A stretch of DNA of 64,000 nucleotides from Gnetum montanum (lineage: Eukaryota > Plantae > Gnetophyta). The stretch covers positions 508,807-572,806 of the forward strand of contig MNCI01001559.1 of assembly GCA_015680685.1 (NCBI GenBank). The letters are read 5' to 3'. Shown one piece after another: positions 15,401 to 21,400 of the stretch; within the stretch, counting starts at the first letter, position 1, and the number at the start of each line of letters is the position of its first letter. Both the position numbers and the translations under genes were made by a program. The notes under the pieces were generated by a model. It saw only the letters and a list, made by a program, of their open reading frames with translations, was not told the origin of the DNA and did no database searches.

Positions 15401-18400
15401 CACAAAGCACACTACTAGCTTCTAGCCATGGCCATCTAGCCTTCTGTTTGTCAGATTACTGTTAATCTCACCATCCATTTGAATAGGTGACTCCAAGTAT
15501 TTGAATTTCTTACATTGTATAACTTCTTTGTTTTGAATTTCAATATTCATTTCTTCATTCATTGCTTTTGTATGGAAATTGCATTCTGATTTACTTCTAC
15601 TAATCCTAGACTTCCCTAGATTTATCTACCAATACAATATCATGAACAAAGAGCATATGCCAAGGGATATCATCTTGAGTTTCTTTAGTTAGCTCATCCA
15701 TAATAATGGCAAGCAAATAAGGGCGTAGAGCAGATCCTTGTTATAGCCCTACCTCCACAAGGAAGATTGTAGTCTCTTCACATAGGATATGAAGTCATGA
15801 TTGCTCCATCATACATCTTGGATAGCCTTTTTGATCCTATAGGAATATCCTTTGTCTTTAACACCTACCAAATAATCCTCTGGAAACTCTATTGTAAGCT
15901 TTCGCCATGTTAAGGAAAATCATATGCAGATTCTCCATTTTACACTTAAATTTCTCCATCAACTCGCTTAGCAAGAAGATAGATTCCATAGTTGATCTTT
16001 TAGGCATAAAACTAAACTGATTCTCATAAACAGTCGATTCTCTCCTTAAACATTGGCTTCCATCAACAGTTTTGATAACAATGAGGTGTTAGCTTAGCGG
16101 TAAGAGTCTTGGCTTTGTAACTCTAGGTCACATGTTTGATTTGACTAGGTAGCATTGAGTTATAAATTAAAAAAAAAAACATTTTTGTAGAAGGAATTCT
16201 AAAACTAGTTCGATAATCCAAAGGGTCTCAGTGGACATAAGTAAAAAAATTTCAAATTCAGAATTTAATAGGTATATAGATCAGCTCATAAAAAACATGT
16301 GTTTCTTTTAAAAATGCTGAACCTATTCTTCTATATATTGTTGTACGGACAGGGCAGCAAATTGGAAATATAGGAAACGTTTGTATGTTCTTTTAGGCAT
16401 TTATATATTATGTTAATGTTGTCTGAAATAGTTATCCCATTATCTTTTCTTCCCTATGAATGATAAGCTTGTCATCTATGTAATTAGAAAAAATATTATT
16501 AATTACGACGTTTTATTAAAACGTTATCTCATGGATGTTGAATTTATTGATTGTGGCTGGATTTGTAACTTGTGTTTTAAGGGATTGGCAGAGATATCAC
16601 TAATGTTAGTTTGATCTGTATTCTTAATGCAGCTTCCTTGGTATTATTTATATATCTGAAATTTTTTAGCGAAATGATCAGGCATTGTGTTAGGAAAAAA
16701 CAAGTACAAAACAAAAGGGGATGAACCCCACAAAACGTGGGGGGCGGGGGCCGGGGGGGGGGGGGGGGGGGGCGGGGCTGAAGATGAGGAAAGGGTAGAG
16801 CCACTGAGATGGAAAAGGAAAACAGACAAAAAACGTAAGAAATTTTAGAGCTGCTAACCATTGATCCTCCCTATAAAATCTGGCCTCTCCCTTACATTCA
16901 AAACCAAAAACCAAAAAGCCAATAGCCCTAACAAGGCACCCTCTCTCCATTCTTGTGAGCATTATCATGTTGCAAGGGCAACTAGCCCTTTCTCGTCTGT
17001 GTATAGAATCTAGAACCTCTCGGAATCGCTTTGTAGCAACAAAGTTTGTTGCTTTTGGGAACTCCTTGTACTTCTATTCCTATTTTCATTGGGCTTCTTC
17101 AGTCCAATTTTATTCGGATGAAATTTGGCAGAAACACTCCTAATATGTCTTCGAAGATTCACCCAGGAAATGTAACAACAAACTTCCATAACTTCATAGG
17201 GGCAACGACCCATTTGAAACCATTGCTAAATGCTAGTTGAGTGAGCTGCTAGTTGCTGCTTTATGAACTGCTCCTCTTCCTAGGCAACTTTGCCACTTTG
17301 AACCTTTGCCACCTTCTCTCTCTGCATTCTTTCTTGGGCCTCACAGTGCAGATCTTCCTGAATATGTGCCCTGAGCTCCTCCTCCAAGCTCCTCCTCCAA
17401 CGTGCACTTGTTGGATGCTTCCTGTAGCTCCCTTAGCCGATGCTCCTAAATTGCAGCTTCATGAGTTTGCCTCTCCACCTCCTGTAGCCAAACTGTAGCA
17501 GGCTCCTCATGCCTGGTGATCTCAGCCGCCCAATGGATCTACTCTTGGTCTTGTGCTTCTTGAACAATGCAACCTAGTTAAGCTTCATGCTGAATTTGAA
17601 GCTCACCACAAATATGCTTTTCAATCAGGCGGATTTGGTCTTGTTGCGGTGGTTTAGTAGCAGAATTCTGATCCAAAGTGCTAGCTCCCACTAGCGGCAA
17701 ATCTGATTCCAGACTCTTCCCTAGTCCCTGCAAAATAGATGAAGAAGATTCTTCCTTAAGGAATGGCCATTAGCATGTATAATAGTGCTTGACTGGGTAG
17801 ATGTGAGCCTGCACAGTTTCCCTTAGCTTGGCTACATTCCATAGTGCCAAAACTAGCCCATAATGGTGCTCTTATTGTCCCCATTGAAGTGTGGCCAAGA
17901 AGAACTTGGGGAGGTTTATAGGGCAACCCAGTTGGAGACAACGCATGAAGGAAAAATGGGAGCTCTAAAGCTTCCAGGCATTCCTGGATTGGATGAAGAA
18001 ATGCTCCACAAGCTCGGTTGCCTCCTGCCATAGGTTTGGCAAGGTGGGCTTAAGAACTTGCTTGCTAGTCATTTTTGGAATAGACCCTTGAAAAAAACTT
18101 TCTGCATCTTGCAGCCCTCATCTTGAAGGTAGAACAATTTCTTCCCTAATAGCAATACCTAGATATTCCACAATATCTTCTTCTGTAAGCCTAATCTGCA
18201 CCCATCGGAAGGTTGTGGAATCACCACGTCAACGAGAAAAGGAGGATGCATATGCAAGATTAGCGTCCCCTACAAGTTGTGGGAGAACGTCATCCCACCC
18301 AATCCTCCGCAGGAGTGCCCACAACTATTGGTTATTTTGGTATCTCTGGTAGTTAGGCTCAAAGGTGGGCATTTGTCCCATGGCTGCCGTGGCCTCCTAC

Positions 18401-21400
18401 CACAACTGCAGGGCCTTTTGAAGAATGATTGTTGGAGATGGCAATGGTACATTTTGAAAAACAAGAGCATTTTGGGCCTTCCACACGGTCCAGAGAATGG
18501 TGTCTACGTGGCAGTCCCCATGCAAGCGCCATTGCATGGTGGCAATCGCCCAAACGGCACACATAACGAGGCATTGGTGCAGGAAATGTTTAACGTCTTG
18601 GCAGCCTTATTGTAGAGGGGACAAGTGTTACGAATCTATAGGCCTCACACCCGAAGTAGCACCAAGATAGGTAGGGCACCATGTGCCACTAACCATAAAA
18701 ATCTTTTAATTTTTTCTGGTAGGTGGCCCTACAAAATCTACCTCCATCCTGGAATGGTTGGGAATTTAAAGCGCAATAATTGACTCGGTGGGGTGCTTAA
18801 CATTCCCAACTGATGCAAGGACTGCACTGTGGCACAAATGCCATGCCAAACATGAGAGTCCTGGGGGCCCATGTCCCAAAATGTATACTTGTGCTGCAGA
18901 ATTGCCATCCATGGCCTATCAATCTTTGCATTTAAGACTTTATTAACAAGCATTTGGTACCCCATTAAAATAACATCTTGGAATTTGGTAATACCTAGCC
19001 CACTTGCATTCTTCGGCTGCACCACTTTTTCCCAAGAGATAAGGTGCATGTGATTTCTTCCTTTTTCAATTGACAAGATAAAATTATGAATAATTTGGTC
19101 CATTCTCTTAATCATCCCTTGTGGATGCATTGCCATAGAAGCTGTATACGTGCTGATAGCTAAAAGGATTGACGTTGTTGAAAGGATTCTCCCTTTTCTC
19201 GTAAGAAAGTGGCTGGTCCAGTGCTGGGTTCTCATTTGAAGTTGTCGGATGAGGTGGACTCAAGTTGCTTTTCTATGCCACCTAAAAATGGAGATCCCCA
19301 AGTATGTTTGCTGTGGGGTGCCCTACCAAATGCCAAGATTATGACAGATATTGCTTCTTACTTTGATATTTGTACAAACAAAGTGGCTGAGGACTTTCCC
19401 TAATTAACGGTCAGAGCAGTCTCCCAGGACATTTAGCTTAGTGCCCTTACAATCGCATCCGCTTGAGGAACAACACTGTGGGTGAACAAAATTGTATCAT
19501 CCGCATAGTGCTTTGCAATACAAGTCACCCCTCCAATCTTGAGCCCTTGGACCCCTTTTTGATCTGCAATATGTGTTCATGGTATCCATGAAAATAATAA
19601 AAAGATATGGTGACTACAGCTCTCCCTGCCTTCAAATCCGCTGAGGGGAGGAAAACTCCTAATGGTTCCCATTAATCTCAAAAGAATAAGGTCCTGACTT
19701 TTGGATTCTACAAATTTTGGATGCAACCCCTTTCTGAGCATAATATCTTTTAACGCCATCCAAGAAATTGCATCATATGCCTTGGCTATATCAAGTTTGA
19801 GGCACATACCTGGGAAGTTCTCTCATTTCAACGAGTGCATGATTTCCTGAATTAAATGATTTGGTCTTGGATGTATTTGCCTTTGATGAAGCTTGTTTGT
19901 TGGGACCCTAACAAACATCAACATAAGAGGCTAAAGTTTGGCCACTAGGATCTTTGTAAACAAACACAGGAGGGTGTTAGAAACCCCTATTGGCCGAACG
20001 TGAGCTGGCTTTATGGGGTTGTCCACTTTTGGGATCAAAACAATCATGTAATAGTTGATCTCATTCCTTATATGTCCCCAACATAGCATCAGGTTAAAAA
20101 CATCCTCTTATATCTAAATCTCCATCGGTCTTCTCCTAGGGGAACATCCTCTAGTTAAAATCCCCAATGATCATCCAAGTCAACCTATCTAGAAGCTTCT
20201 CAGCAATTCTGTAGGGCTCTATGAATCGTGCCTCTGGGTCCTGTGACCCATAGAAGTTAGTAATCTAGAAATTTTGAGCAGGCAAGAAAATTGAAATACC
20301 CCATTTGGAAATATCAAACAACTATAGATTAACACGGGAAATGATTGCTAATCCTTCAGACTTTCCAATGGAATCCACAAACACCATTTGCCATCCTAAC
20401 CATTCCAAAACTTGCCTCTATGCCTCAACCAATTTGGTTTCTTGTAGAAGATTCTCTTGAATTGTTTGAACTAATTCTCATAGGGTACTTCTTTTGTAGG
20501 GGGCTACCTTGTCCCTTGCAATTCCAAGAAAGAATATTCATTGTTTACTAGTGGATTGTTTCTTATATACCCCTTTGAGGGTAGTTTGGGTCCCTAGATC
20601 AATCTTCTTTTGAGTCTTTTTCAACCTTAGTTTCGACACAGTTGGTTGCCCTGTTTTTTTGGGTTTAGCCAGCACCTCAAAACTAGTCTCTTCCTCTTGC
20701 TATACTGCTTGGAGGATTGGCTTCAATGGCGATTTGGAGGACCCCTGCTCTACAAAGATCCAGTCATTCAAGGGTGGGGCACAAAAGGGGGAAGTTGCCC
20801 CGCCCACCGGAGGCATGTTCTCTGCAACCTCTAGAGTCCGCAAAGGGGGGAACAATTTTGGGAATTGACCACCCATTCCTGCTCAGAAGATTGCCATGAA
20901 GGGCCCAAAGGAGAAGACAAGAGGGGTGGCGTAACACAAGGAGCCGGGTTATGCGATGTCCCTGGAATAGCCTACTTATGAGCTTGTCTAGCTTTATCCC
21001 TCTGCTTAGCTGGGCCACAACCCTTCTCTTGAAATCTACATTCATTTGTGGCATGGTTCCCCTTGCCACAAGCTCCACAACTCTTGGTAGGGTTCCTTCT
21101 CGAAAGGGTTGGGGGGGGGGGGTTGGTGGCAAGGTGTGGCGGGCCTGCATGTTTAGATTTTCATACTCTACTGTTAGAATCTCCCTTGGAGAAAGGGGCC
21201 GCTTGACACAAAATCGAAAATATCCCATCCTCTCCATTAAAGTGGTGAATTTGTCAAAGCCGATAAATTCACTGAAGAAACTAGCAAGTGTGCGCAAAAA
21301 TTTTGAGCCCAGAACTCCCATGGCACAACCGAAATCTGGATCCAAACTAGGGCCTGTGAGAAAATATCTGATGTTTGGTGAGCCCTACCTGCCAAGGTGT

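Follow-up and report, generated by a model that had tools for sequence, protein, structure and literature searches.

Does a long interspersed nuclear element (LINE) family of the gnetophyte Gnetum montanum encode, at the end of its reverse transcriptase (RT) protein, a homologue of the DnaJ/Hsp40 J-domain? The question was raised by a preliminary description of a 64,000-nucleotide (nt) stretch of the genome (assembly GCA_015680685.1, contig MNCI01001559.1, positions 508,807 to 572,806 of the forward strand), which we refer to as the window and whose own numbering is used throughout. The window has a G+C content of 39% and contains six LINE pieces of one family, which were defined by translated self-comparison and three-frame reading. 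Our best explanation, to which we assign a probability of about 0.8, is that these copies belong to an old, diversified family of plant-type LINEs whose coding region was extended beyond the zinc-binding region (zf-RVT) by a domain of ~160 residues (the middle domain), a charged helical linker, and a true J-domain homologue, this tail being most likely a part of open reading frame 2 (ORF2). The six pieces are as follows:

16661-22096, minus strand: copy C, a LINE nearly complete except for an internal stretch of the endonuclease/RT region that is deleted; comprises ORF1, endonuclease start, RT, zf-RVT, tail, 3' untranslated region (UTR), and short A run
7467-9621, plus strand: copy A, internally deleted, with the 5' terminus and tail kept
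56446-59191, minus strand: copy B, with the RT region deleted
about 40398-43299, plus strand: copy D, internally deleted
46572-50424, plus strand: copy E, with endonuclease, RT (Pfam RVT_1), zf-RVT, and middle domain
51891-52950, plus strand: copy E', a rearranged D-type tail with a partial duplication; 3' UTR and poly(A) follow the J-domain remnant

The copies align with each other at 31-46% amino-acid identity, and their kinship was visible at the protein level only, as blastn with the C tail as query revealed no similarity in nucleotide sequence among the copies of the window. Every LINE copy of the window is a dead relic. Five of them (A, B, C, D, and E') end in the same block of ~65 residues:

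8985-9191, plus strand: J-domain homologue of A, stop-free, with HLD at 9069-9077
56838-57044, minus strand: J-domain homologue of B, with one in-frame stop and HRD at 56952-56960
16999-17204, minus strand: J-domain homologue of C, with HPN at 17112-17120 and a 1-nt frameshift between helices II and III
42804-42971, plus strand: J-domain homologue of D, with an intact HPD at 42876-42884 and two stops in helix III
52501-52650, plus strand: J-domain remnant of E', without HPD; a short deletion stands where its sister D has the motif

The peptides quoted in the preliminary description were all present as given (A on the plus strand from 8985, B on the minus strand from 57044, C on the minus strand from 17204, and D on the plus strand from 42804), and the frameshift reported for C was found between helices II and III. 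The motif is encoded by CAC CTG GAC in A, CAC CGA GAC in B, CAT CCG AAT in C, and CAC CCT GAT in D. Each of the variants HLD, HRD, and HPN therefore differs by a single base from HPD, which among the five copies is kept in D only; this bears out the earlier claim that the variants are single substitutions of a motif retained by D, and E' has no such motif at that position. The H-x-D site lies at the canonical spacing from PYEV and within a predicted loop, helix II is basic, with many R and K residues, in A, B, and C, and these three copies have MEV instead of LGV in helix I. The J-domain spacing pattern pointed out in the preliminary description held in the alignment of the profile with PDB sequences, in which PYEV, HPD, and FKE were in register over the whole domain.

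Homology of the block to J-domains was examined with profiles made from natural window pieces only. When the profile of seven pieces, whose consensus at the motif site is HPD, was compared with the PDB, 34 of the 36 matches at E<=10 were J-domains (best E 1.1e-3); they span DNAJA, DNAJB, DNAJC, DnaJ, Sec63, and T antigens, and the alignment covers the whole domain. The outcome was the same for a profile of A, B, and C only (D and E' left out), for which the top 27 matches were all J-domains. An exhaustive HMMER search of 1.84 billion representative proteins gave five matches at E<=1e-3, the best at 9e-5, each of which is a Pfam DnaJ protein (E 1e-15 to 1e-23). A profile-profile comparison by hhalign returned a probability of 97%, although its independence is limited, the five targets having been chosen by the same profile. 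For the reverse search, a J-domain model made from the five database proteins was searched, unfiltered, against the 2110 stop-free six-frame pieces of the window, and C, B, A, E', and D ranked at the top with E from 1e-5 to 9e-3; the match after these five had an E of 1.2. A marginal sixth match at 44431-44607 looked like noise on reading. The identity to canonical J-domains is only ~20-26%, and a phmmer search with the A piece alone found no match in the PDB. At the level of profiles, homology of the tail block to the J-domain is established in both directions.

Structure prediction gave a divided answer. From the window pieces alone, AlphaFold returned a hairpin of two helices whose loop holds the H-x-D site, at a predicted local distance difference test score (pLDDT) of 75. 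When five database J-domains were added to the alignment, the model comprised helices at 7-10, 19-33, and 41-80 with a pLDDT of 89, and nearly all of its top Foldseek matches were J-domains; because database J-domains were in its alignment, this model is not independent evidence. Judged from the models, the sequence is compatible with the J fold, and a J-domain fold of the block is probable. The fold check proposed in the preliminary description gave a J-like model with added homologues and a generic hairpin with the window pieces on their own.

The preliminary description had further placed the domain inside the target-site duplications (TSDs) of A, B, and C. These duplications were located and they enclose the block:

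22109-22097 (5' copy) and 16660-16648 (3' copy), minus strand: 13-nt TSD of C
59207-59192 and 56445-56430, minus strand: 16-nt TSD of B
7450-7466 and 9622-9638, plus strand: 17-nt TSD of A, 15/17 identical

Each copy ends with a related 3'-terminal motif followed by an A-rich run, and the J-like block lies ~350 nt upstream of the element 3' end, upstream of the 3' UTR and the A-rich tail. The flanks of the copies differ, and the insertions are therefore independent. Because the TSDs enclose A, B, and C and the five copies are collinear, the block is part of the element. It had been described as the same terminal domain of four copies, immediately before the 3' UTR and poly(A). The shared block was confirmed, and E', a sister of D, adds a fifth tail to those of A, B, C, and D; its strictly terminal position is less certain, as ~40 codons past helix IV are conserved at the protein level between B (56700-56837) and C (16900-16998), and thus the J-domain is perhaps not the very last part of the protein. 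In A, a stop follows soon after helix IV.

Several other features of the ends were seen. The TSDs of A (7450-7466) and C (22097-22109) both contain AGATATATAA, which may reflect a target preference of the endonuclease. The 3' UTRs of A (9510-9530), B (56575-56595), and C (16735-16755) have a short G5/C5 hairpin-like motif in common, as well as long G- or C-rich runs; the stability of the 3' UTR folds was not raised relative to shuffled sequence (z from -0.02 to -1.45 for whole UTRs). Copy A starts (7467-7520) with ~45 nt similar to the 5' terminus of C, followed by a 17-nt A run and the terminal 2 kb of the element; the copy derives from an internal deletion rather than from simple 5' truncation. 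Copy E' (51891-52662) is a rearranged or deleted variant of the tail: in its two partial repeats, the beginning of the middle domain is followed immediately by helix II of the J-domain.

The following parts of the element upstream of the J block were located:

21038-21079, minus strand: CCHC knuckle in ORF1 of C, read from the sequence
20500-20541, minus strand: endonuclease start of C, with the typical N-terminal motif readable
18549-18713, minus strand: zf-RVT-like zinc-binding region of C, read from the sequence; the Pfam match is on the equivalent piece of E
49645-49731, plus strand: zf-RVT of E, a decayed piece (PF13966, E 2.8e-4, 21.9 bits, under the 27.5-bit gathering score)
17860-18380, minus strand: middle domain of C, ~160 amino acids, 41-46% amino-acid identity to A and E in ungapped alignments
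17230-17700, minus strand: charged linker of C, rich in E, K, R, and Q, coiled-coil-like by composition

Pfam RVT_1 matched copy E with an E of 8.6e-10, and a second RT piece was also found; the nearest solved structures of the RT are R2 and LINE-1 ORF2p, both weak matches. The Cys/His pattern of zf-RVT is readable in C and E. For a putative apurinic-type endonuclease, the typical N-terminal motif can be read in C, and the decayed pieces gave no Pfam match. A non-LTR-type RT, zf-RVT, TSDs, and an A-rich 3' end are those of a LINE, and the backbone is that of the plant L1 type; the L1-clade placement given in the preliminary description is putative.

The middle domain is the best conserved stretch of the tail. 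It had no match in Pfam at E<=10 (11 pieces), in the PDB, or in a word-indexed protein collection, and a search of the ESM Atlas with the J-domain piece and the middle domain yielded matches at the noise level or none. The idea that it might be a plant mobile or transposon-protein domain (PF10536, PF20167, or related) was dropped, as none of these was matched by the 11 pieces at the same threshold. RNase H was not matched either, and there is no space for it between zf-RVT and the middle domain.

Whether the tail was translated was examined from its divergence between copies. In the between-copy tail alignments, the proportion of synonymous differences (pS) was ~0.8 (saturated) and that of nonsynonymous differences (pN) was ~0.4, with pN/pS of 0.43-0.51. 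Because these alignments were selected by protein similarity, neutral decay of the A tail was simulated and the same ratio was taken in the best match; 40 runs at 45% nucleotide divergence gave a median of 0.86 and a minimum of 0.62. The observed ratios, which correspond in kind to the dN/dS estimate suggested in the preliminary description, lie below the lowest simulated neutral value. In the J block, the identity by codon position was 0.64, 0.64, and 0.42, with third positions the most diverged. The signal is conservative because decay after insertion shifts the values towards neutrality. As judged from these codon comparisons, the tail is shown to have been protein-coding while the lineages diverged.

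The extent of the frame was assembled from different copies. Copy E has zf-RVT in frame with the middle domain, and together they align with C over 223 codons without a gap; the middle domain is in frame with the linker in C and B, as is the linker with the J-domain in A and B. At none of these junctions do the copies compared have a stop in common. As no stop is conserved from zf-RVT to the J-domain, a fusion to ORF2 is likelier than a separate ORF3, and a single ORF2 is favoured by joining the frames of different decayed copies.

A tail translated alone as a third ORF (middle domain, linker, and J-domain), instead of as a C-terminal extension of ORF2, is rather unlikely. In its favour, a TAG codon in copy C stands right after the region in which the ORF2s of plant LINEs without RNase H usually end, and six codons beyond it lies an ATG that is conserved in C and E. 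The codon in question, which follows a conserved QLW, is however AAA in E and, in the frame set by the ATG of A, TGT in that copy, the residues flanking it are conserved on both sides, and in E the tail is in the same frame as zf-RVT. The earlier proposal that the LINE fuses a J-domain to its RT protein is accordingly supported: the frames favour an extension of ORF2 with no conserved stop, although no single copy is open and a separate ORF3 is the less likely alternative.

The identity of the block as a J-domain homologue in an extended ORF2 has to be weighed against several observations. No copy in the window has an open frame, and HPD is intact in D alone and missing from its sister E'. The low pN/pS was derived from alignments picked by protein similarity. 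Foldseek found no J-domain with the window-only model. Pfam DnaJ (PF00226) had no match at E<=10 to six single stop-free pieces, which are decayed and partial; the comparison with the DnaJ family by HMMER- and HHpred-type methods, as put forward in the preliminary description, succeeded with pooled profiles, the reverse model, and hhalign, but not with single pieces. No intact relative of the tail was found among the 1.84 billion proteins. Two in-frame stops in the middle domain are common to A and C at aligned positions (C 17982-17968 and 18231-18229; A 8267-8269 and 8003-8005), one being TGA against TGG in E and the other TAG against CAA in E. We assume parallel transitions at TGG and CAG codons as their cause; such transitions, at the few codons that a single change turns into a stop, would account for the sharing.

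That the likeness of a charged helical tail to a J-domain is due to chance, as the failure of single pieces in Pfam and the generic hairpin of the window-only fold could be taken to mean, is scarcely credible, because the matches are specific to J-domains in both directions and reach an E of 9e-5 against 1.84 billion proteins. A passenger origin is very unlikely as well. Under it, a fragment of a host J-protein gene would have been taken up a single time, through transduction or template switching, and then carried along passively as 3' sequence without a function; LINEs do acquire host sequence, and any function of the J block is putative. Against this, at least two deeply diverged subfamilies (A/B/C and D/E') have retained the block, its synonymous sites are saturated yet its amino acids are conserved, with third positions the most diverged, and in A and B its frame is that of the tail upstream. 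Less improbable, though still unlikely, is a pseudo-J-domain, i.e., a descendant that has lost the ability to activate Hsp70 and works as a scaffold of helices or as a binding module. HPD is missing from four of the five copies, the identity to canonical J-domains is as low as noted above, and MEV stands in place of LGV in helix I of A, B, and C. These features are set against the distance of one base between each variant and HPD, the changes in A and C being transitions as expected from post-insertion decay, and against the HPD consensus of the profile and a helix II that is still basic; HPD was probably the ancestral state. Of all these readings, we retain the plant-type LINE family with an extended ORF2 that ends in, or close to, a true J-domain homologue.

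On the function of that domain, we lean slightly towards a lineage that encodes its own working Hsp70 co-chaperone, in which the J-domain was selected as an integral part of the RT protein and brought host Hsp70 to the ribonucleoprotein in cis. By homology, and from the general behaviour of J-domains, the J-domain of an active element would dock host Hsp70 via the basic helix II and the HPD loop; docking would trigger ATP hydrolysis, and Hsp70 would be loaded onto the protein or ribonucleoprotein of the element. Plausible uses would be the folding of the large ORF2 protein, particle assembly in cis, or remodelling of the target site during target-primed reverse transcription. Hsp70 recruitment is inferred from the homology of the block and from how J-domains act in general. 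The hepadnaviral reverse transcriptase requires Hsp70 and Hsp40, as do several replicases of RNA viruses, and both chaperones are encountered in LINE-1 particle preparations.

Two further features of the surroundings were seen. Exon-like pieces of a JmjC-domain host gene lie at 12356-12773 on the plus strand (Pfam JmjC, E 1.9e-4), and the long introns of this gene, or their vicinity, probably harbour the LINE copies. At 15422-16007 on the minus strand, short ORFs carry RT motifs typical of another retroelement; they had no Pfam match at E<=0.1.

Accessory domains gained by LINEs are known, namely RNase H, helicase, and esterase. Plant L1-type LINEs reportedly carry an archaeal-like RNase H domain after the RT and zf-RVT, as Smyshlyaev et al. 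are said to have described in 2013. The Gnetum family has the same backbone (endonuclease, RT, and zf-RVT) and the same site of gain at the C-terminal end of ORF2, but with neither a match nor room for RNase H; the middle domain, charged linker, and J-domain are found instead. A J-domain used by a selfish element to engage host Hsc70 is known from the polyomavirus large and small T antigens, whose structures (PDB 1gh6, 2pf4, and 9evh) were among the PDB matches of the seven-piece profile. Both are selfish elements encoding their own J-domain, with the difference that the link to Hsp70 is here one of homology only and that the domain is N-terminal on a regulatory protein of a DNA virus in the T antigens, whereas here a retrotransposon protein carries it at the C-terminal end. 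Class C (type III) J-proteins, such as auxilin and Sec63, have a J-domain without a G/F (glycine/phenylalanine-rich) or zinc-finger region. The Gnetum block is likewise an isolated J-domain on unrelated domains of the kind that specify the client, with no G/F region or DnaJ zinc finger after it; its carrier, unlike theirs, is the reverse transcriptase of a mobile element.

In insects, the ORF2 of R1 and TRAS LINEs gained a C-terminal viral superfamily 1 (SF1) helicase domain (PMC4686597, PMC5563155). The Gnetum elements are likewise a LINE lineage with a foreign accessory domain that has persisted for a long evolutionary time at the ORF2 C-terminus; the domain of R1 and TRAS is an enzyme of viral origin, whereas the one described here is a co-chaperone module of presumably cellular origin. 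No report of a LINE or other retrotransposon with a J-domain, or of a LINE with a co-chaperone module, was found in full-text searches of the literature, and the exhaustive protein search likewise lacked any relative of the tail; the preliminary description, too, knew of no such LINE.

The window marks a large, old, and hitherto undescribed LINE lineage in the genome of G. montanum, which carries the middle domain as a second conserved domain. If the reading is true, the J-domain described here would be the first on record for a retrotransposon, in parallel to that of the polyomavirus T antigens, and a J-domain hard-wired into the element would argue, on natural genetic grounds, that the LINE life cycle is limited by chaperone loading.

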